From NCBI GenBank assembly GCA_977016875.1, contig CDRNST010000013.1, positions 992,001 to 1,056,000 of the forward strand: DNA of 64,000 nucleotides. Direction: 5' to 3'. The DNA is from Pavona decussata (lineage: Eukaryota). Position numbers and translations under genes: made by a program. Positions within the stretch are counted from its first letter, which is position 1, and every line of letters begins with the position of its first letter. This document shows, in pieces, positions 6,963 through 63,011 of this stretch. The notes beneath the pieces were generated by a model. It was not told the origin of the DNA, did not search any database, and saw only the letters and a list, made by a program, of their open reading frames with translations.

Positions 6963-7198
6963 CAGGGCGTACCCAATCGATGAAATCGATGATCGATGAC
7001 AATCGATGACAATTAATCGATTGATATTGATAATCGATGAACAATCGATCGTCCAGGTTTGTGTGATTATCGATTGTCATCGATTATCAATATGAATCGA
7101 TCAATTGGCATCGATTGTTATTGATTATCAATATCAATCGATTAATTGGCATCGATTGTCATCGATTATCAATATCAATCGATTAATTGGCATCGATT
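6963..7198. repeat. Left TIR plus subterminal array of 16 ATCGAT hexamers (copy 1)
   Basis: Counted by eye; interspersed with ATCAAT/ATTGAT and TAAT/ATTA. Confidence 0.9.
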
Positions 7199-8018
7199 CT
7201 TTAACAATTTTCATCTATTGGTTATTATTGTTATTTTCAGTCATGATTTCCAAAGGCAGAGTCTCTTGATGCATTTTAATGACGAAAACAATGACATCAT
7301 TGGCAGAAGATCGAGGTTTTTTTACAACTTGACAGATAATCAGCTTAATTCTGCTTAACTGAATAAAGTTGTATAGCTGTATAGCATACACATGCGTCTT
7401 GTCTTTTCGCATTTCCCGTCCTTTCCTCTGGTTTGTGCTCGATGAAAGTTACAACAATCTGATTTTATTAAAAAAAAAAAAAAACAATAAACTTGAACTT
7501 TGAAACCCAAACATCTAGAACATAACGTGAAAACACTTACAGTTTACTTACAGAGGCGATTTTTGATGTAATTGTTGTCGCGATTTTCATTGTTGTCTCG
7601 CTCGCGCTGCAACTCAAATTCTACCTGTTATCACAAGGCGTTGTGACCTTACGACGAAAACGACATCATCCTTTTTTGTAAGACGTGTTTACGCATTTAC
7701 CACATTTCGTAGACATTCTAGCTAGTGATCAAAATCGCAACTCGTTGCAGCACTATCACGAGAAAATACGCAGTGGAAATCGCGGAAATTGCAACAAAAT
7801 CGCCTGTGTAAACGAGCTGTATTAATTTTGAACGGGGTGGCCAAAAGTGTCAACTGTTTGCAACTTTGAAGTCCAGTTTACAGGAATTCACTTTCAAACT
7901 ATAACGATGTTAATAGTTTTATACCGCTTTCAAAAAAGTACCTCGCACCAATCAGTGGCACATTAGTAGCCCGGCCTCGGCATAAACAGTAGAACCCATG
8001 TCTATTAGACTGTAACTG

Positions 8019-8570
8019 TCACCACAAAAGCGGTTTACATTTACTTGCGCAAAAAAAAAAAGAGGTCAACAACAACAGCAGCAGTGCAAGGAGTATGGAA
8101 AACAGACAAGTTAGTTCCTCGAAAATAAGTGTTGCTTGAATTGACATCAGTGTGTTAATGACGTGAAGGTAAATCGCGTTTGCCATGTACGCATTGATCA
8201 GATCAATCATAAACAGTAAAAGCAGTAACAGGTGGATCACTCTTTCTTTTTTTTCATCAAAATAATAGATAAACTTTGAAGGCTGTACAATTTTACGTGC
8301 ATGACAAAACCGCGAAGAAGTGGAAGGAGAAGAGCAGGTACTCGCTTTTGCAGTGAGAGACTCGGCAGAAGTGTCCAAACTGTGGCTTGTAGTGCTTTCG
8401 TGACCAGTAGCAACTGTGCTTGTAGCGGAGGCTGTACATGTCATATTGTTTGCTTTTTCCCTTGCCGCTATAACTTTCTCGATCAGGACCGTTTTTTTCC
8501 AACTTTTTTTGTACGGCTCGCCCATTTCGTCCAAAATTTCGCGCAATAACGTAATGGTCATATCATTCAT
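8019..8570 (-). CDS. HeH/SAP/LEM-like helix-extension-helix domain, Ser/Thr linker and hydrophobic (TM-like) tail; in frame with and directly after the transposase
   Basis: MTITLLREILDEMGEPYKKSWKKTVLIEKV fits the HeH/SAP pattern; homologue at 57743-57958; separated from the transposase by TAA-ATG-AAT-GAT-ATA-TAA, which overlaps a 15-bp tandem duplication (8560-8589). Confidence 0.6.
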   Translation of the reverse strand: MNDMTITLLREILDEMGEPYKKSWKKTVLIEKVIAAREKANNMTCTASATSTVATGHESTTSHSLDTSAESLTAKASTCSSPSTSSRFCHARKIVQPSKFIYYFDEKKERVIHLLLLLLFMIDLINAYMANAIYLHVINTLMSIQATLIFEELTCLFSILLALLLLLLTSFFFCASKCKPLLW

Positions 8571-8585
8571 TTATATATCATTCAT

Positions 8586-11500
8586 TTATTTTTTCTCTTT
8601 CATCCTTTCGTTGCAAATCCTCTTTTTCTTCCTCTCTTCGTCCATTTTCTGCAGTCGTGGCAATTCCTTTAAAATATCCGTCAAATCAACGTATATCGGC
8701 CATTTAGGCTGTGAACCACTAACCTTTCCCACTACTTTGAGGATGGTATGAACTTCAGACCAACGATAGGTGGGAGTAGTTTCCAACTCCCACCCAAGAG
8801 AGTCTTTTTTCTCATAGTTTAACACCCTAAAGCAAATGGTAACTTTTTCTCTTTTTTTGGAATCTGATCGCCATTCAAAAACTGGAAAGTTTGATTTTAG
8901 AGACGGTGATCTTACAATCCTGACAATATGGGCAACTTGTAATCCTTCCGATGGAATCCACAATGCAACGATGTCGTTGATGTAAGTACCAGTTTCGACG
9001 CGTTGAGGGTTCATGAGATTTTCGATTTTTTCATAAAAATCGTTTCTCGCCGACTCCATCCATCGTGCAAGTCGTGATGTGGCAGGACGGTATACTTTAC
9101 CTTCCTGCAATGACAGAAATTCTGCCATATGGTAATGTTGCCCTTCATGCTCTACATAATTTGGACGAATAGAGTAATTGGTTTGACGTTCTGCGCTTTT
9201 GGTTTTTTGGTCAACCCGAAGGCGTTTTGGCTGGGGCTCGAGAATAACGTTTTCGTCCACCAGTGAATGCTTTTCTGACTCTAAAGCTACCAATTTGTCA
9301 CGAAAATGTTCCCTGATGTTGGTATGTTTGGGGCAGATAAGTGTATACTCGTCTCTTTCCTTGTCTGTTGCGAATTGCAGAGAGAGACACTGTTCGTGAT
9401 ACCAATCTTTGCAAGTAGGATAACTGCATCCCACCCAGTGAGTGTTTTTGGGAGGGATAAACGATTTATCTAGGTACTTGCACTTCCTTTCTTTATAGAA
9501 TGAACAATGTGTAGGACTGTCTTCATCGTCATCTTTGTCTTCCTCATCCTGATCAGTGTCTAAAGAGGCTGTCGCGGCCAAATCTACCAACGCACTAAAA
9601 TGATTGCTTCCATGATCTTCAATGGCAGTTAAAAGCACCTCATTGTCTAAATCAAATAGATCCTCACTAGATATTACCTCATTCTCATCAGGTGCGTCCC
9701 ATACGGCAAACGTTCCAAACTCGGGAGTAGTTATATTGATAATGTCATCGCCCTCTAATTTAAGGATGTTTCCTTTGACTAAAGCTGGCAACATACCTAT
9801 AAGCTCTAACGTCTTCAGAACTTCTTTCTCTGCCATTATCATGCCTGCCTTAAGTTCATCGTCGATGTTTTGTGGCCATTGCGGCAGTTGCATGTCTTGA
9901 GCCTCTTTTTCTACTCCCAATTTCAGTTCTAATTTTTGCACTCTTCCTGAGAAATCTATCATGTCTAGCAAGGATAAATTAGGCTTCCCTCGACAGAAAC
10001 ATCGCAACTTTCCAAATAATTCCTCGCACTTTTGCGAACCAAATGTCCAAGGATGAAACACATGATTCGGAAAATACACCGAAAACATCTTCATTGATAG
10101 AATGAGGCTATGTCCCGCCAGAATTGTATCATCAAACGTTTGCTGTGAAATAAAGTTTTGATGAGCATCGTATCCTTCAATTTTTAACCAGGCTCGCCAA
10201 TATCGAAGGAATGTCACAGGTGCCCAGGCAAGCTTTGCGCGTTGTTGCACAGTCAATTCCCTCTCCGTATACGCCTCTAGCAAATACTGCCCCATTTGCA
10301 AGTATGCTCTTGTCGCAAGAGTTTCCTTATCACTCCACTCTTTCATACAAACCCTGACTTCTTTCTGTAAAATTCTCATGGCCGCATTGACGTTCTGCTT
10401 GTCTTTCATGAAAACGTCACTTTTCCATAGACCCGATCTTATTCTGTCCTTTTCAAGCACCTTTATTATATGTTCTATTTGAGCGGTACCTTTGCCAATA
10501 ATGAGAATGCGTTTAACGTTCAGTAGTTGGTTGCGCCATTTTTTTATTAGATGTCGCCAATCTGGGAACATGAGGGTTGGTACGGAAGTATCAATATCCA
10601 TGTTCTGATAGTCTTCAACTACAATGTTGAACTCAAAGGAGTTATAATGAAGACTGACGATATCGTTTCTGTCCTCTTCCCGTTTTTTGAAGCGATCGAC
10701 ATAATATTTACGGACTTTGGAATCACCATCCGCTCCTAATCCAACTACTTTCATACCGTTACGCAATCCCCACAAAGCGACTTGATTGAACCAGTGGTTC
10801 ACAAGGGCGTGGTCTTGACCCTTATAAACAGGGCTGATAGCCAAAACAAACGACGGTACGTGATCTTCCAGTGGTGCCAGCAAAAATGCATTAGCTTGTT
10901 TAGCCCTTTCGTTACTTCCATCCTTCACTACATCTATAATGTCTTGAGCGGTAGTGAGGACACACTCACTTTCTGTTGCCAAACCTATCAGCTTATTACC
11001 TTTAACGCGCAGGGTGGGAATGACCGCAGTTGCGTCGATCGCCAGCTGGAAAACGCCATTATAGCCAATTTTCTTGTAAAATGATGCGGCTAGTTTCATG
11101 GCGTTTTCCTCTAACTTAATAGGAATGGCATAGTTACACCTTGCTGTGCGGTACATCGTGTTTAAACTGGGACCACCAATTTTATCCTTAACGATTTTGG
11201 CCAACGCTGGACCTCCATAGTCAAGAATGGTTGTAAAGAGGGATTTCGTCTCATCGCTCCATCGCTTAACTGGCGTGCCTCGATTGTGAATCAAGTTCTT
11301 AAGTAAGGAAGCCAATACTAAACAGTCTTTATCAGGATTTTCCATCATAGCAGCAATTTTAATAGCTATATCAGGAACAGCACGATTAATATTGTTTTGT
11401 TCCGTTAGTGCCTTAAGTTCTTCAAGCGCAATTTCTTTATCTCTTAACTGTGTCTGCATATCTCGTACTTTTGCGCGATACATATCAAGAAGTGCGGAAT

Positions 11501-11906
11501 ACTCAACCATGTCTTGCAACAGACATTGTACAGCTTTTGATCCTGTTGCCTCCCTTGATGATATTTGTGACATTTCGAGAACGATCTTGACTTGTCGTAA
11601 AGCGTTTTCTTCGAACTTTTCTACCTCTGTACTTAAAGTAGTTAGAATTTCGGGACCAATAGTTGCCGCGGTTCTGACGGATGCTAGAGTAGACGACAAA
11701 ATTACTTTTTGTACACTTCTTGCCATGGCCAATTGTTCCCGTTGGAATTTGTCAACATTATCCCTCACTATTTCCTCTACAGAAATGTCCGAAGTAGTTT
11801 TATCAGGTTTGGGTTGCGTTGTTGTAGATGTACTGGACTTTGCAATGGACCTTCCGAGTCTTGTTCCAAGTTCTTTTTCAATTTGAACTTTTGTCCTTGA
11901 CTCGAT
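8586..11906 (-). CDS. P-element/THAP9-type DDE transposase (main exon) with C-terminal acidic linker and PHD finger
   Basis: GPSLNTM (P-type PS..TL helix), LAIDATA (D1), GLGADGD (D2), FPDWRHLIKKWRNQLL (DxxH...RN), KDKQNVNAA, SQKCEELFGKLR (E); PHD-like WVGCSYPTCKDWYHEQC...ICPKH; frame open up to a TTTTAG acceptor at 11907; an upstream exon ends at 12120 (AAG|GTTAGT). Confidence 0.88.
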   Translation of the reverse strand: MESRTKVQIEKELGTRLGRSIAKSSTSTTTQPKPDKTTSDISVEEIVRDNVDKFQREQLAMARSVQKVILSSTLASVRTAATIGPEILTTLSTEVEKFEENALRQVKIVLEMSQISSREATGSKAVQCLLQDMVEYSALLDMYRAKVRDMQTQLRDKEIALEELKALTEQNNINRAVPDIAIKIAAMMENPDKDCLVLASLLKNLIHNRGTPVKRWSDETKSLFTTILDYGGPALAKIVKDKIGGPSLNTMYRTARCNYAIPIKLEENAMKLAASFYKKIGYNGVFQLAIDATAVIPTLRVKGNKLIGLATESECVLTTAQDIIDVVKDGSNERAKQANAFLLAPLEDHVPSFVLAISPVYKGQDHALVNHWFNQVALWGLRNGMKVVGLGADGDSKVRKYYVDRFKKREEDRNDIVSLHYNSFEFNIVVEDYQNMDIDTSVPTLMFPDWRHLIKKWRNQLLNVKRILIIGKGTAQIEHIIKVLEKDRIRSGLWKSDVFMKDKQNVNAAMRILQKEVRVCMKEWSDKETLATRAYLQMGQYLLEAYTERELTVQQRAKLAWAPVTFLRYWRAWLKIEGYDAHQNFISQQTFDDTILAGHSLILSMKMFSVYFPNHVFHPWTFGSQKCEELFGKLRCFCRGKPNLSLLDMIDFSGRVQKLELKLGVEKEAQDMQLPQWPQNIDDELKAGMIMAEKEVLKTLELIGMLPALVKGNILKLEGDDIINITTPEFGTFAVWDAPDENEVISSEDLFDLDNEVLLTAIEDHGSNHFSALVDLAATASLDTDQDEEDKDDDEDSPTHCSFYKERKCKYLDKSFIPPKNTHWVGCSYPTCKDWYHEQCLSLQFATDKERDEYTLICPKHTNIREHFRDKLVALESEKHSLVDENVILEPQPKRLRVDQKTKSAERQTNYSIRPNYVEHEGQHYHMAEFLSLQEGKVYRPATSRLARWMESARNDFYEKIENLMNPQRVETGTYINDIVALWIPSEGLQVAHIVRIVRSPSLKSNFPVFEWRSDSKKREKVTICFRVLNYEKKDSLGWELETTPTYRWSEVHTILKVVGKVSGSQPKWPIYVDLTDILKELPRLQKMDEERKKKRICNERMKEKK

Positions 11907-55407: not shown

Positions 55408-57742
55408 TCGGCAATAATGGAATTTATTTCTTTTCCCTTTTTGATGAGTTTGGGGATTGTGAGATCAAATAATGCATTCCCAGCTCTCACTAAAATCGCT
55501 TAAATGCACCTAAACAAACATAACATAGTTTGGACAAGCAAAACTAAAAAATTCCATAGAAATTGTACGAAAATTAAGGACTCCCGTACAAATGGAAATA
55601 AAAGTCCGCGTACAGGTGCCGTACAAATAGCCACTGTCTAAAAAAATATCTTGCTTACATTTATACATCACATACGGTCACAGTGCGTTTGGAAACACTA
55701 GAGAAATATCGATAGTTCATTAACAATAATCGGCTTTAGAGTCAAATTGGTCAAAACATAAGACACCTTCTTTCACGTTTTTCAGTATTTGCTGGCTTCT
55801 TGTATGTCTCTTCAAAATTCACCCCCACAAAAAACTGCAGGTATTTGATAGTTTTTTTTTAACAGAAACCATGAGCTTACTGCGAAAGGTATGCATCTGA
55901 AAATAAAAGCTATGACCAATCATGCAAATTTTAGTAATTCTGACCAGGCTGTTGATAGGTTGTAGAGTCAAAAGTCAAAAATCAAAAAGACCACTAATTG
56001 TCCTTGTCCACTAGTTTAGTACTAAGCTCATAGCCAGCATTGTAATGTTTCTACATGCCTAGTCTTGTTGCCATGGCATACGTGTCAGTTCCCCATACAG
56101 ACATATTTCCATCTGTGATTATAAAAGGTGCATGTGCATTTAAACACTGTGAACACAATGGTCACTTTTAATAAGCCCATCTCTTTCGGGGATCTTTACA
56201 TAAAGAAATGAAGGACTTAGAAAAGCTGCCATATCTAAATTAAGAACTACTAACTACACAGGGAGTTCTTGCAAACCCACAATCAGTCACTCATCATCAA
56301 CACATGCCAATGGTAGAAAGTACACAGAACACTGTATGTTGCATCATGTGCTTGTTAACCAGGAATGACTTGTTGTACTGATTCCCAAGTATTTTTATGC
56401 TTAATTTTCAATTACATTGATTGTCATGATAGAATACATGTATACAATTTGCATTATTATGGTGATGATGATCTGAAGCGGATCCTGGAGTGGTTTGGCC
56501 AAAACCCCTAAACTAGTGAAATGAAAGACAATTAAAAACAGTCACAATGTCCTATTGTTTTACACAGCTGTTCTTTGTGGATCATCACGCAATGCTTCCC
56601 CTAAGGAGTGTTGGGTGACGACACAAAGAACAACTGTGTAGGAGACTAATGCTGTCCTGAACAGACTGAAACAGTAATACAAAATATAAACAAGATTTTC
56701 AAAAACACATTTTTTTCCTCATTGCAGTGGTGAAAAAAGTTGAGGTTTTGCATAAATTATATAAGATAATGGCAACTTATATACAGCTTATATATATGTA
56801 CAGCTGATTTGGAGAGGATTTTTTTGTATTGAGCCCTTCATTTATACAGGGGGTATCTAATCGATATTTTCGATACTCGATAGAAATTGATCGTAATCGA
56901 TAATAATCAATCAAATAATATCGGAAATCGATATATATCGATCGCTCGTTTTCTTGTGATTATCGATTTTGATCGATTTTTGGTAATTAGCTATCGATTT
57001 TATCGATTTGTTCGAAAATAGACGAAGATCATGTCGATTCATTTTCGTCAAGTGTTTATTTCTAGCGCCTGGTTGATCCTCACCAGAACGAATCCCCAAC
57101 TCACTCAAACTAATAACAGCAGTCCATATAAATTCAATTAACATCCTCTTAACACTTAATTGAAGTTTGACTATCAGAGTTTAAATTTCGCTATAAAACT
57201 TAAAAGAATGGAGCATGCAGTGTATTAAAACAACAAGACATTGAACATTTTGTAACGCAACGTAATGCAGTGTAACGCAACTGTAATTTACGCGTCCAAG
57301 AAGTCACGCTTTCTGGCACGCCTGCTAGAGTTTATCCTACAGGTTTATCTTTCACGAGTTCTTTTCTCGTTCTGTTTCAACATTAACAACCTAAAAACTA
57401 TTGCAATCAAAGATATCTATATCGCTTTTAAAGCTTGGCAAGGCAGACTTGTAATGTCCAGGCCAGAAAGCATTTCTGAATTTACTTTCGCGAATAGCCA
57501 ACAAGATAGTAACTCCATCCAAAGACGAAAGAACTCAGTAACAAACCCTGTGACAAAACCTACATGTAGATGTAAACTGTAGACCATAACAATAAAACAA
57601 ACTACTGCTTGACAAAGAATTGCTGAGAACCTATAAGTTCAAAAAGAAAGAGCAACTGAAATAAAGATGTAGAAATCGTTCTTTTCTCTTGTCGTAATAA
57701 ATTAATGGGAACAAAGAGGCCTTAAATGTAACCCTATTAATT

Positions 57743-60040
57743 TTATGCCAGTGATTGATCATCATCATGGTTATTATTATAATTCAATGGAAAATGAAAG
57801 GGCCTGCCTTGTTGACAATGACTTTCTTGCAACTCTTCCCGGGCCTGGCGAACTTTGGCAATAAGGTCTTGTTTCTTGTCACTCGCTTTATAAGTGACGT
57901 TTAGGTCGTCAAGAACTTCTTTGAGAAGACGTATGGTCATATTTTTTGGTTCTCCCATTTTCTTTTCTTTGCTTCTATAGAAACCTCGTAGAGGCGCAAA
58001 CAGTCTTTCGCAGCTATCCTAACCAAAAACTTTAAGATGGAACAGTTCATCAGGAAAATGTTTCGAGAAAAGTTTCATCGAGAGGACAAGTGTATGTCCT
58101 GCGAGTATCATATCGTTGTACGTTTGCAATGATATAAAGGAGGTTTCTATCGAATAGCTTGACATCTCTATCCATGCTTTCCATAAACGAACAAAGCAGA
58201 CCGCCGACCACGCTAGCTTTGCTCTTTCTTTGACAGATAAGTTTTCTTCTGTGAAACTTCTCATCATGTTATGCCCTATCTTAAGGTAAGTACGAGTTGC
58301 TTCCGTATGTTGGTCATTCCAGTCTTGTAAGCACTGTCGGACCTGTGGCTGTAAAATCCGCAGTGCGGCATCCACATTCTGTCTGTCCCTAACAAAAACG
58401 TCACTTTTCCATAAACCACTGGTCAGTTTGTTTCTTTCATACAGTCCCATTAAGTCCTCGATCATGACGAATCCATTTCCGAGCACCAGGACCCTTCTAA
58501 CGTTCAGTATTTGATTCCTCTGTTTCTTAATTAGGTGCTTCCAGTCAGGAAACATAAGAGTAGGAACTGTTATACCGTGAATATCTTCGGCAACACTGAC
58601 AAAACTGAAGCCTTTGTGGGGAATCGAAATCACGTTGTTCAAATGTTCGCGCCTTTTTAAGAACTGCTCGAAATAATATTTTCTAAACTTACAATCTCCA
58701 TCAGTGCCAATGCCTAATATTTTCAAATGTTGTTGTGCCCCCCAATTTACTGCACTATTGAACCAGTTAACAACTGTTTCAAAGTTCTGTCCCTTAACAG
58801 CAGCTGACACAGCAAGCACAAAGCAAGGAACATGCTCCTTAAAGGGGGTCAGGACAATTGCATTGGCTAATCCCGCTTTCTCCATGCTTTCATTGCCTGT
58901 AATGTCAATGATGTCTTGTGCTGTTTTTACGACAACATCCTCTTCAGTGGCTATACCTATCAACTTGTTTCCTTACACCCTGATAGAAGGTAATATGGCC
59001 GTCGCATCCATAGCAACGATAAAGGGCCCGTGATATCCAATTCGATCATAGAAGGAAGCTGATTTGGCAAAAATACTTGCTTCTAATTTGGTCGGAGTAT
59101 GGAATTTGCTTCTTGCCGTTACGTAAGCGGTCTGAAGACTTGGCCCGGCAATTTTTTCTCTTATTATTCTTAACAATGCCAGCCCACCATAATCCAGGGC
59201 AACCGCAAAAAACGATTTTGTGTCATCATTCCAGCATCTACTTTCTTTTATGCTGTTTGTTAGTAGATTGGAAACAATGGATATTAATGTGCTACTCTTC
59301 TCACCCTGATTTCCATTCACTGTGGCAAGTTGCATTGCAATCTCTGGCAACTGCTCTCGGGCATTTTTTCTGGCTAGCTCTTGCTCCAAGTCGTGTAATG
59401 TCTCTTCTGAACATTTTACTTGCAGCCGAAGTTTTGCGATTTCATTCCTGTACTTTACTGCTAAAGAATACACTCCTACCATGCCCTGTTTTAACAAGGA
59501 TGTCAGTAGATTAACTTTTTCACGATAGTTTCTATCTTGATGCGACGGTCCCCAGAACTTTTGCATTGCATCAATTCTTTCCTTAGTGGATTTATGCATT
59601 TTGTATCTGTATTCTGTCAAAAGATGTGTTATTTTCGCCGTAAAAGAAGACATCCGTTGCATTTTCGACAGTGCTGACGAAAGTAACATTTTTTCAATGT
59701 TGTCTCTTGCTTCCGCAGTGCGTTCAACCTGTTGTAGTTTTGTATTGCAGATAATCTCTTCAACTGGAATGGTTGACCCCATGGTTGTTGATGTATGCGC
59801 TGACGAAGATGGTGAAGATTCCAACACCATTTCACCCACTCTTTGTCCAAATTTCTTATTCATTTCTTTTCGTGTCTCTGAGACAACCTTTTCCGTCTCT
59901 GCGGCCAGAGCAATTGTCCTCATGCTCAATGAATGTGCAAATTTTGAATCGATTGTAGTAACTGGCAGGGTGGGCGGTGGCCTTGCGGGGACTCTGTTTG
60001 TAGGTGCCTTTCCAAAGAAAGTTGTCAATAGTTTGTTTCC
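57743..60040 (-). pseudogene. P-type transposase of copy 2, in frame with the HeH domain; two nonsense codons; PHD region absent
   Basis: VAMDATA, GIGTDGD, FPDWKHLIKKQRNQILN, GLWKSDVF, VFG*DSCERLFAPLRGF then EKKMGEPKNMTIRLLKEVLDDL; one reading frame with stops at 58973-58975 and 58019-58021. Confidence 0.88.
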
Positions 60041-60791
60041 TGTTGTTTAAAAACAAAGATTGTACTGAAAGATCCGTAATTACATACACTTAAAGTCCTC
60101 TTGTACTAGAAAATCCCGGCTTAGACAATTTCTTAGGGTGGCTGGACGGACTTTTAAGTGCTTGTATCCGGGTGCCCGGGGAAAGAGGGCGGGGGGCGGG
60201 GGGGCGATATCGTCACAATTCTTTCTAGACCGTCAGCACTGCACTCTTAGTCAGTGTATGAATACTACCGTTTGGAGATAGTAATAAAGCTATCATTGAC
60301 TGATACTGTTTTTTCGTTTTCTTTTGTTCCCACCACCCACAATCTCTGGCAGTTATTTAATCATGACATCGAGAGGGAAAGCGCAATGAGAGTCTTAAAT
60401 CTTACTTCCGAATTTTATTACCAGCCTCCTCTGATTGTGCAATAGCAGAGGGCATGAGAGACATCATGACTCATAGAAGACAAACCATTACAAACAAACT
60501 CGAATGGCGGGTAATTTTCATAAAACACTTTCTGACAACTGGTGTTTCTAAAACAGATTTTTGAAATGAAAAATTCGCCTAGATTCCCTCTATTGTTCTC
60601 ATAACACGCTGATGTTGTCCAGTGTGTTGTATTAGCCTCATAGGGGGTATAATAATTTACATTCTATTTTTAAACCTTGCACGCTTTGCTATTGCACGCA
60701 TGTACAGTCTGTCAGCATCAGTTGGTCTATGCGTTGCGTTCAGAAGGCTCTTTTTCTCTTTCCGTCCACGTGCACCACGAACGCTGTATGA

Positions 60792-61198
60792 AATGGAAGC
60801 CTGTAAGGTTGTTAAAGTATCGGTTGTCATCCATGATAAATATCTGGATGATCTGAAAGGTTTTGTCACAGAAAAAGGAGGAAGCGTGGAGAGTTCGGAG
60901 ACTTCAGATGTAAATGCCGCATGTGATTCCGGGTGTTCTGACGCAGTGCCTGACGCAGAAGCTCTTGTGCCAAAGGAAATCGCGTCAAAAATTTGTCGAT
61001 GGCTCCAAAGAAACAGTGTTCCTGAAAAGGTTTTCGCCGAGAAAATTTTGCATCGATCACAAGGATCGTTTTCAGATTACATGTCGAAGGCACCATCAAC
61101 TATGCCAAAAACACATGGCCGGGGAGTTTGGCAAGAACTGAACGATTTTTTGCAAAGCAAAGAGAAGCAAGAGGAGCTGCTACAACAGCTTAGGGAAG
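60792..61198 (+). CDS. CUT-domain protein exon of copy 2; homeodomain exons not found
   Basis: KEIASKICRWLQRNSVPEKVFAEKILHRSQGSFSDYMSKAP...GRGVWQELNDFL; phase-1 donor G|GTAAG at the same position as in copy 1; N-terminal VSVVIHDKYLDDLKGFVTEKGGSV matches copy 1 ITVEIPASEKEKVLQFVEGCGGKV. Confidence 0.8.
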
Positions 61199-63011
61199 GT
61201 AAGCTCAATAACCCAGTAACTGTTCATATCTTTTTAAACATCAGTGTAAACGTGCTAAACACCACCATAAGACTGCTGGGCCGGAATATTCAGCTGAATA
61301 TTGCCTGTCAGTGAAGAAAGAAAATTAGAAAAAGTAGCTAACATAAGACTGCATAAAGTAAGATCAAAGTCGATTACGAGGTAAGAAAGTTTTCATGTCC
61401 GCCTAAGGAGCAGCTTTCACCATTTTTGTTTACGAGATGGGTGTTAAGGTTTGGCGCACGTTTTTTATTACCGATTTTTATCGATGTGATAAGAAAGTTT
61501 GTGATTATCGAGTAATCGATTAGCTTTTCGATGATCGATTTCGATCGATTAGATATGCCCTGATTTATAATATAGTTTTTCATTAGTATCCTTGTTGATG
61601 TTGCTGTTGTTTTTGTTCTTATAATTTGCATATTCACTGTAACTTGTCACACTTCTATCTTTGCAGAACGAGGTGATGAAGATCAGGAACCAAGCCTTTG
61701 TAAGTGCTTTTTATTTCATATTGAAAAATGAAATGAAAGTGAACAATGGTAAAGATATTTTTAAAGCATCAAGAGATACAAAAACAAATATTGGCAGTCC
61801 TTATCTTCTCTACATTATCTGTTATTGTTGAATATTGTTGCATGGGCTAAAGCACGAGTGGATGTTCTTCGATTACTTATAATATATCAAATTTTCCATT
61901 ATGACATTGCTGACGATTTATCCACTGTAGGAGTAATCACAGGTACGCTTAAAAATAACTAGACAATTGCAGCACGTGTAAAGCCTGGTTTTCACCACGT
62001 CGCAAGCACAAGCACAAGCATAAGTGCAAGCATAAGTAGCTTATGCCCAGCGAAAACAAACACTACGCAAACGAACGCAAGCATATACGCGCAAGCCCAA
62101 GGAGAAGGAAAGATTTTGATCCTTGCGCTTGTGCTTATGATTGCGTTAAGCCCGTTTTCACAGTGAAATAAGGGGTCTTGTGCTTAGGCTTGTGCTTGCA
62201 TGGCTAGTGAAAACCAACTAATATGTAAGCTAAAAGTAACAACATATCTGGGAAGGCATTATCAAGTTGCAACCGCATAACTCAGTCTCCAAACATGTGG
62301 TATCTATGGTATTTCCTTACAAAGAAATTCCCGTTTTTTTGCAGACAAGAATGTGTCAAGTAGGACAAACGAAGTCCTAAAATGCATTGAGGCAGTGGAT
62401 CTCTTCCATTTCCAACAAACACGTTTGAAGAGGTAGGCTGAGGCATGCAGTCTTACATACAATAATATTGAGATTTGCTGTTGTCTCAGTGCCCTGTTCC
62501 ACAACCATTTTAGACAAAAATTAAAGGTCTAGACAACATCTTTATCAGCTTTTTCTGTTTTCTCTTAAGTTCACATGGCAAGGTACAGAGGACTCAAAGG
62601 TCATGGTGGTTGTGCTCTTGCACTTCAATTGTTCTCCTCAAAGCAAGAGAACCTTAGTTTGGTGAGTTGCCTTTAAACATTGTCTCATAGTGTTGTCAGT
62701 AAATCGTGTATGGTTAAGTTCATGATCTAATTTAAAAGAGAAAAAGTTGATTCTTTTCTTGTGAACTAAACCCATGCAAAGGAAAAGGTAAATTATTCGA
62801 TTATATACAATATAATTAGAAATTAAAATACAACATGACTAACCAGTATACACAGATGTTCTTAAATAGTCATACAATACTGTAAATTAAAATCTTCAGC
62901 TGGTCCAAGCCTCAAAAAAGGGCATTTGAGAATGAATGCACTTATGTGAAAACAATATATTTGAAAAATTATGTGGATTAAAAAATGAATATAATGTGAA
63001 TGGTTGAATTA

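Follow-up and report, generated by a model that had tools for sequence, protein, structure and literature searches.

A decayed transposon of Pavona decussata and its cnidarian relatives, in which a transposase of predicted P-like fold is paired with a CUT-homeodomain protein

Introduction

Transposons of the P superfamily exhibit target site duplications (TSDs) of 7-8 bp, and PIF/Harbinger elements act as a two-protein system comprising a transposase and a Myb-like DNA-binding protein. The published TSD length of the P superfamily is about 8 bp, and Dada elements are devoid of terminal inverted repeats (TIRs) and target small-RNA genes (PMC3706591). RAG-like elements have 5-bp TSDs, heptamer-like ends and convergent genes (PMC7204232). 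With regard to CUT proteins, helix 3 of the CUT domain reads the major groove (PMC4901127), and ATCGAT is the consensus site of p110 CUX1 (PMC2248751). The present work concerns a stretch of 64,000 nucleotides from Pavona decussata (contig CDRNST010000013.1, positions 992,001 to 1,056,000), hereafter the window, which is free of N and is not human DNA, and within it a 4.7-kb DNA transposon at 56847-61562, named E2, which we compared with a longer element of the same window, E1.

E2 is very probably a decayed, internally deleted copy of an ancient cnidarian two-gene family, in which selection has kept a transposase gene and a CUT-homeodomain gene together and in which the CUT-homeodomain protein would bind the ends of the element. 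Full-length members of this family are about 8 kb long and comprise two divergently transcribed genes between TIRs of the CAGGG type, flanked by a 7-bp TSD. The first gene encodes a transposase of about 1270 residues (core, PHD finger and HeH/LEM-like domain, followed in anthozoan copies by a hydrophobic tail), and the second a small protein of about 240 residues with one CUT domain plus a homeodomain. The closest relatives of all sequences studied are found in corals, sea anemones and one hydrozoan. In the full text of 8.1 million PMC papers and 0.36 million preprints, a search that did not cover Repbase, no publication turned up that describes a CUT or homeobox gene as a conserved component of a transposon.

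Results

Architecture of E2 and E1

E2 is bounded by 19-nt TIRs beginning with CAGGG and by a 7-bp TSD. Its features are given below in window positions, followed by E1; L059, which serves as a reference, is a Tara coral metagenome contig carrying a full-length relative 96-97% identical to E2 in DNA.

56840-56846, no strand: left TSD, ATTTATA, identical to the 7 bases at 61563-61569
56847-56865, plus strand: left TIR, 19 nt, beginning with CAGGG, 89% complementary to the right TIR (2 mismatches)
56860-57007, no strand: left subterminal array, composed of 8 ATCGAT sites; the conserved TGTGATTATCGA forms part of it, at 56955
57417-57742, minus strand: remnant of the hydrophobic (membrane-like) C-terminal tail, which aligns to the unbroken tail open reading frame (ORF) of L059, but in three frames
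57743-57958, minus strand: exon for the HeH/LEM-like domain in the tail of the transposase (Pfam HeH 5e-7, passing the cut-off), 98.6% identical to L059
57959-58018, minus strand: junction of the in-frame 1398-bp internal deletion, with the DSCE catalytic motif still encoded
58019-58021, minus strand: nonsense codon TAG, at the Ser position of the FGSxxCE motif
58022-58972, minus strand: second half of the transposase catalytic core, holding the GxGxDGD motif, 50% identical to E1
58973-58975, minus strand: nonsense codon TAA, Lys in E1 and in the family consensus
58976-60028, minus strand: N-terminal coiled coil and first half of the transposase core, with the AIDAT motif, 32-33% identical to E1
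60793-61198, plus strand: first exon of the CUT gene, comprising a small N-terminal module and the CUT domain (about 60958-61198), frame open
61199-61259, plus strand: start of the phase-1 intron (G/GTAAGCT), about where the deletion of about 1.8 kb begins
61480-61549, no strand: right subterminal array, composed of 4 ATCGAT sites; TGTGATTATCGA at 61500 is oriented as it is at the left end
61544-61562, minus strand: right TIR, 19 nt
61563-61569, no strand: right TSD, ATTTATA
6963-15249, no strand: reference element E1, clade A (TIR, HeH/membrane segment, PHD, transposase on the minus strand, CUT-homeodomain gene on the plus strand, TIR)

The transposase of E2 as a whole occupies 58019-60028 on the minus strand. 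The CUT domain lies in an ORF at 60622-61314 on the plus strand (Pfam CUT 1.4e-13), and a database protein, P0028, is 97% identical to the first exon of the CUT gene. When the pieces of E2 were searched by tblastn, the other matches in the window fell solely inside E1, with order and strands unchanged. Together with the Pfam map, this bears out the order that an earlier note on this DNA had proposed for both elements, namely TIR, HeH/membrane segment, transposase (minus), CUT gene (plus) and TIR. The same note described the TIRs as related but distinct and the TSDs as different, and both descriptions hold. The left TIR of E2 differs from the TIR of E1 by 3 mismatches, and the TIR pattern (up to 3 mismatches) occurs four times in the window, each time at an end of E1 or E2, where 0.01 matches would be expected by chance. 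The TSD is ATTTATA in E2, GTATAAA in E1 (8287 bp) and GTTTATG in L038, a 97% identical copy of E1 elsewhere in the genome; it measures 7 bp in each of the three, with different bases every time.

These duplications bear on the possibility that the locus is an immobile duplicated pair of host genes, consisting of a domesticated transposase and a CUT gene, flanked by inverted repeats through chance. The long transposase ORFs with PHD and HeH domains do resemble domesticated chromatin proteins. However, the three insertions exhibit different 7-bp duplications exactly outside the TIRs, many copies are decayed and internally deleted, near-identical multi-copy insertions occur in other assemblies, and the ratio of nonsynonymous to synonymous divergence (dN/dS) is near 1 between the youngest copies. 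A host gene pair is thus the least credible of the explanations considered here.

The proteins of E1 and E2 are homologous yet diverged, as previously claimed: by tblastn, identity amounts to 50% in the transposase core, 32-33% in its N-terminal part, 34-35% in CUT and 49% in HeH. At the DNA level, just short stretches of the core and the termini can be aligned (68-82%), and synonymous sites are saturated, with a proportion of synonymous differences (pS) of 0.78-0.87 and of nonsynonymous differences (pN) of 0.32-0.42. The intron following the CUT domain, which had been reported as a conserved phase-1 intron, starts at 13481 in E1 and at 61199 in E2; both donors split a Gly codon in phase 1 at the homologous position. 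The G/GTAAG junction after CUT is also present in L055, an element of clade B (the clade of E2), and in genes of Oculina and Clytia. A second intron, located inside the homeodomain just 5' of V(S/T/K)TWF(Q/R)N, is conserved in E1, clade B, Oculina and Clytia.

E1 itself is not fully intact. Compared with P0001, an unbroken ORF of 1271 aa, it has lost 1 nt from an A-run at 8571-8600 and has undergone a small rearrangement there, and as a result two in-frame stops separate the tail of the transposase from the HeH/membrane part. L038 likewise shifts frame at this position.

Decay of E2

The transposase gene of E2 is a single reading frame from 60028 to 57743 that is interrupted by two in-frame stops, TAA at 58973-58975 and TAG at 58019-58021. 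Neither is found in L059, so both are private to E2. After the catalytic DSCE, L059 carries 1398 bp more than E2, encoding a mid region, the PHD finger and a tail, and the loss in E2 is in frame. L059 also has a homeodomain exon downstream of its CUT exon, which E2 lacks. On the right side of E2, comparison with L058, which has a matching right end, indicates that about 1.8 kb is gone, including both homeodomain exons. The two nonsense codons and the loss of the PHD and homeodomain regions had all been noticed in the earlier note; the list was nevertheless incomplete, since two frameshifts relative to L059 in the hydrophobic tail downstream of HeH had been overlooked. What E2 has kept comprises both TIRs, both ATCGAT arrays, an open CUT exon and, just after the TAG codon, the DSCE motif with the catalytic Glu.

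Because L059 keeps the missing parts and has neither stop, E2 derives from a full-length sub-family by internal deletion, and E2 acquired its stops after insertion. It would be mobile only if the proteins were supplied in trans.

Further copies in the genome and in other cnidarians

The whole 602-Mb genome (G000, in which the window lies on contig C13) was searched in six frames with the E1 transposase core, which yielded 45 matches distributed over about 20 places; stops are present in most of them. When the two CUT exons served as queries, matches were found adjoining six transposase places beyond E1 and E2. Five of these are confirmed pairs, whereas the match at the sixth (C33, E 6e-4) is weak and tblastn did not confirm it. 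L038, L040, L044 and L051 carry the divergent CUT/transposase pair, and L040 is complete and about 50% identical to E1. The closest kin of E2 in this genome is L043 (C96:1754500-1764400), which is 80% identical in HeH and 58% in CUT. L045 and L047 (C90:199500-209000 and C90:141000-150500) have arisen by internal deletion, so that the homeodomain exon directly adjoins the transposase core, which starts at about residue 220-240; their sub-family is 60-75% identical to E1.

In Oculina patagonica, an annotated 239-aa CUT+homeodomain gene lies head-to-head with a 1334-aa transposase homologue, P0017. The pair constitutes a complete element of clade C (L031:5073-12972, CM126638.1) inside perfect 20-nt TIRs, with a TSD that can be read as 6 or 7 bp. 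In Clytia hemisphaerica (L032), a CUT-homeodomain gene is located upstream of, and divergent from, the transposase P0022. Queries from the CUT side (the E2 ORF or a CUT profile) returned contigs with the same layout, namely L054/55/56, L059 and L062. This layout is shared by L063-L065, with uninterrupted transposase ORFs in L063 (1264 aa) and L065 (1248 aa) and ATCGAT arrays at both ends of L063, L064 and L065. The view that the architecture is a family trait is therefore upheld by at least five further places in the genome, by Oculina and Clytia, and by several coral-metagenome contigs.

Several other loci deserve mention. L039 (C382:2376500-2386000) carries a CUT-homeodomain gene and a right end identical to those of L038, 10.7 kb away, with shared flanks and no transposase upstream; rather than an insertion of its own, it is either a segmental duplication or a repeat in the assembly. 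In the metagenome contigs L060 (1075-2974) and L061 (5666-7565), three tandem ORFs, each with an element-type CUT domain of the hydrozoan-like clade, adjoin a 1055-aa ORF unrelated to the family transposase (hhalign probability 0.1%). These could be a multi-CUT derivative or a domesticated gene.

Phylogeny and co-inheritance

In a transposase tree based on 451 core columns, nearly all clades are fully supported. Clade A comprises E1, L038 and L040; clade B comprises E2, L059, L055, L043, L041 and others; clade C comprises L044, L046, the Oculina copy and others; L063 and L065 form a further clade, and there is a hydrozoan clade. The CUT trees, which are unrooted and include one host CUT gene (the Onecut-like L053), were built on about 78 columns with 88 or 25 rows. 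In these trees, the element CUT domains all lie on one side of a branch, apart from repeats 1-3 of Cux and from L053, with a support of 91 in the Shimodaira-Hasegawa-like approximate likelihood ratio test (SH-aLRT) with 88 rows, and of 88/89 with 25 rows. E1 groups with L040 (100/99), and E2 with L055, L043, L058 and L051 (98/97), the inner order being that of the transposase tree. The sole apparent difference between the trees, L063 beside L044, is not significant (p = 0.22 for the transposase-like grouping in the approximately unbiased, AU, test). When 1.84 billion proteins were searched with a profile of element CUT domains, the best matches comprised about 50 clusters of small proteins of the element type, each with a single CUT domain, and the next were three-CUT Cux proteins.

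The congruence check suggested in the earlier note thus yields CUT clades that mirror transposase clades A, B, C and the hydrozoan clade, and the element CUTs form one clade instead of each nesting with a different host gene. This shows that the two genes were already co-inherited before the family clades, which span scleractinian corals and a hydrozoan, diverged, and that they have been so ever since. The same trees bear on a scenario in which E1-type and E2-type transposons captured a host CUT gene twice independently and converged on the same order. Such a history would fit the E1 and E2 CUT domains being merely 34-35% identical. In contrast, the element CUTs stand together, apart from the host Onecut-like gene and the Cux repeats, the elements have in common the orientation of the genes, the N-terminal module and both introns (the phase-1 intron and the one in the homeodomain), and the CUT clades mirror the transposase clades. 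Two captures are therefore highly improbable.

L046 (C175), a decayed transposase, is much closer to the Oculina copy L031 than to clades A and B of its own genome. The clades are therefore older than the split of these corals, or have moved between them.

Selection on the two genes

We estimated dN/dS by the Nei-Gojobori method (NG86) on tblastn-anchored codon alignments, with the following results.

Clade-B sub-families (dS about 0.2-2), transposase core: 0.13-0.16
Clade-B sub-families (dS about 0.2-2), whole transposase: 0.2-0.25
Clade-B sub-families (dS about 0.2-2), CUT exon: 0.075-0.19
Clade-B sub-families (dS about 0.2-2), homeodomain exon: 0.05-0.12
Clade-B sub-families (dS about 0.2-2), CUT and homeodomain pooled: 0.11-0.26
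E1 versus L038 (dS 0.013), whole transposase: about 0.9
E2 versus L059, transposase and CUT: 0.3-0.5

In this comparison, which had also been proposed beforehand, dN/dS is 0.075-0.19 for CUT and 0.13-0.25 for the transposase, and 1 is approached only between very young copies. The near-1 value of the youngest pair and the intermediate values of E2 versus L059 are those expected under neutral decay after insertion. These ratios show both genes to be under purifying selection, and along the active lineages the constraint on the CUT gene is no weaker than that on the transposase. The further copies, the matching trees and the dN/dS values thus all support the claim of an old pairing maintained by selection, rather than a one-off capture.

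Among the clade-B copies E2, L059, L055 and L043, all pairs exhibit a synonymous divergence of CUT+homeodomain that is 1.4-2x the transposase value. We rejected the possibility that the two genes had recombined within clade B, since no pair is free of the excess, not even the youngest, and both genes branch in the same order. The simpler reading is a rate difference; alternatively, the excess could reflect constraint on the synonymous sites of the transposase.

Fold and class of the transposase

An AlphaFold2 model of E1 residues 140-720, with a mean predicted local distance difference test (pLDDT) of 83.7, matches the Drosophila P-element transposase (6p5a/6pe2) with a Foldseek E of 1e-12 and a Z of 27.7 over 404/442 residues. 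The alignment with 6p5a spans chain residues 130-566, the insertion region included; in the P superfamily, it is the insertion domain that binds the cofactor GTP. The next-best folds are Transib/RAG1 (Z 9-11) and Hermes (Z 9). The model accordingly exhibits the hallmarks predicted for a P fold, i.e. a helix-turn-helix and an RNase H domain split by an insertion domain, and the element exhibits TIRs and a TSD within the 7-8 bp of the P superfamily. The invariant AIDAT, GxDGD and FGSxxCE motifs are compatible with a DDE triad. No THAP or other DNA-binding domain was found in exon 1 of E1 or in the first 330-380 residues of P0001, P0004, P0008, P0017 and P0022. Because the fold and the 7-bp TSD match, whereas the sequence and the THAP domain do not, the modelled transposase is best described as P-like by fold, short of membership of the P superfamily by sequence and THAP.

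Other superfamilies were considered. Kolobok, which has no solved structure among the folds compared, was ruled out by its TSD length, and Transib and hAT by their TSD lengths and a weaker fold score. Dada (6-7 bp TSD) was ruled out by its lack of TIRs and its targeting of small-RNA genes (PMC3706591).

A strongly hydrophobic C-terminal segment after HeH, preceded by a YYD/FDExKER motif, is a conserved feature of the anthozoan transposases (P0001, P0004, P0005, P0008, P0010 and P0017, and in the window 8019-8300 on the minus strand); it is absent from the two Clytia proteins. The combination of HeH and a putative membrane anchor recalls inner-nuclear-membrane proteins. The genome also contains four distant transposase paralogues with 25-26% identity: L034 (C215:2440547), L035 (C339:1894687), L036 (C382:1551887) and L037 (C65:2810991). 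The first three exhibit long open frames of 833-1077 aa, and the frame of L037 is split by a stop into ORFs of 603 and 469 aa. None of the four has a Pfam match. A 350-aa ORF lies upstream in L034 and L037, with a weak BED zinc-finger match in L034 (E 0.011); a DNA-binding domain of its own may exist in a related lineage.

The CUT-homeodomain protein and the element ends

The CUT gene was searched exon by exon. The CUT domain lies upstream of the homeodomain in one protein in E1, Oculina, L055, L059, L058 and L063, and E2 keeps the CUT part only. The protein falls outside ONECUT and CUX, as a separate clade with a support of 88-91 in a sampling that did not include SATB.

Of the 49 ATCGAT sites in the window, the 300-bp ends of the two elements account for 37 (E2 contributing 8 and 4), and 10 lie in the 51 kb outside the elements; no other part of the window is rich in this motif. 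Such arrays are also found at the ends of L038, L041, L055, L057/58, L063-65 and both Clytia loci, and in the one Clytia end examined ATCGAT is mixed with ATCGAAC-type sites. In the Oculina element L031, ATCGAT is replaced by AATCGAAC-type sites, with 13 and 14 copies in the two ends. The start of CUT helix 3 reads RAKST in Oculina and RSQG in the others, so the changes in the site and in helix 3 may represent protein-site co-variation. No ATCGAT sites are left in L043. Deaminated arrays (ATTGAT/ATCAAT) were sought at the ends of the old copies L040, L043, L044 and L046 and none was found, so these ends are lost or lie outside the DNA examined.

As the transposase has no THAP domain and ATCGAT is packed into the ends, the CUT-homeodomain protein is probably an end-binding subunit, not cargo. 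It would recognise the ATCGAT-type arrays at both ends and, once bound there, would bring to them a transposase without a DNA-binding domain of its own, following a two-protein logic like that of PIF/Harbinger. As in a two-component system, a single pair of TIRs encloses both genes, which are inherited together. In the earlier note, the CUT gene was called cargo. The pairing as a family trait stands, but the word is probably wrong, since the transposase is devoid of THAP and the ends are tiled with the CUT/Cux site, which makes the gene look like a core component. A predicted complex between residues 1-860 of the Oculina transposase and the N-module+CUT of its neighbour scored 0.00, which speaks neither for nor against binding.

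The gene could still be true cargo without a role in transposition, encoding a transcription factor that acts on host or element expression or an end-binding repressor, of which examples are known in other transposons. Purifying selection and co-inheritance would be equally expected for a useful passenger or a self-regulator. However, the family transposases exhibit no recognisable sequence-specific DNA-binding domain, so something else must read the ends. Moreover, the CUT/Cux site is the only repeated motif in the ends, and in the Oculina clade a change in it is accompanied by a change in the helix-3 residues of CUT. A passenger role is thus unlikely, although it retains considerably more weight than the two captures or the host gene pair discussed above.

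Discussion

The reading of E2 as a degenerate member of an old two-gene family, with a CUT-homeodomain protein acting at the ends, has to be weighed against several observations that speak against it. The dN/dS values were obtained in part from decayed copies, and on the deep branch between E1 and E2, where pS is at least 0.78, it is protein conservation, and not dN/dS, that points to selection, because synonymous sites are saturated. L043 is rearranged, with the CUT-homeodomain gene on the transposase strand, 4 kb away, which could be due to an inversion or to a second truncated copy. No CUT gene was detectable near the transposase remnants L041, L042, L046, L048, L049 and L050 or near Clytia L033, which fits decay or truncation. 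The support of 88-91 for the element-CUT branch is not decisive, the alignment having about 78 columns and the tree being unrooted. The transposase core has no Pfam match and no PDB sequence match, only the PHD finger and HeH being detected. Finally, the enrichment of ATCGAT at the ends is circumstantial as a link between the CUT-homeodomain protein and the ends or the transposase.

A broader proposal is that, across Cnidaria, a P-fold transposase devoid of THAP depends for end recognition on an obligatory subunit, namely proteins of the single-CUT+homeodomain type, co-evolving with their own subterminal site, which is ATCGAT in clades A and B and AATCGAAC in the Oculina clade. We advance it tentatively, with a chance of being correct that we place slightly short of even. 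What seemed to be a single odd element is a member of a family, a widespread cnidarian P-fold lineage, in which the built-in THAP would have been replaced by a separately encoded CUT-homeodomain protein. For transposon biology, this would provide a second, independent example of a split between transposase and recruiter, with a readable DNA code, in that ATCGAT and AATCGAAC arrays pair with different CUT helix-3 residues.

With regard to homeobox evolution, dozens of gene models of an atypical CUT class in cnidarian genomes are transposon genes, and one may ask whether the exchange went from transposons to the CUT class or the other way. For the Paired domain and the transposases of Tc1-like elements, a common transposon-borne ancestor has been suggested. 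As the CUT tree is unrooted, animal CUT-class genes and transposon CUT genes may also share a transposon-borne ancestor. For annotation, fragments of the E2 type, with a CUT domain and no homeodomain, will be mis-called as host CUT genes.

Comparison with known systems

The CUT-homeodomain protein resembles Cux and Onecut proteins in having a Pfam CUT domain followed by a homeodomain with WFQN in helix 3, and its nearest non-element matches are three-CUT Cux proteins. In contrast to these, it has a single CUT domain, lacks the KPKPW-type motif and is encoded by a transposon. With the RAG-like elements (ProtoRAG/Transib), the cnidarian family shares two genes between TIRs, a PHD finger within the system and a distant RNase H similarity (Z 9-11). 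However, this fold match is far weaker than that to P, and the PHD finger is carried by RAG2 in the former, whereas it is carried by the transposase in the cnidarian family.

The likeness to P-element/THAP9 comprises the predicted P-fold core, short TIRs with internal subterminal arrays of binding sites, and a 7-bp TSD. Unlike these, the cnidarian family has no THAP domain and no sequence-level match to the Pfam P-element/THAP9 models or to PDB sequences, its transposase adds PHD, HeH and a hydrophobic tail, and its second gene encodes a CUT-homeodomain protein. As in PIF/Harbinger, two genes lie inside the TIRs, the transposase has no domain of its own for recognising the ends, and recruitment probably falls to a small DNA-binding protein. 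PIF/Harbinger differs in its unrelated transposase fold, its 3-bp TSD and its Myb/SANT partner, the place of which would be taken in the cnidarian family by the CUT-homeodomain protein.

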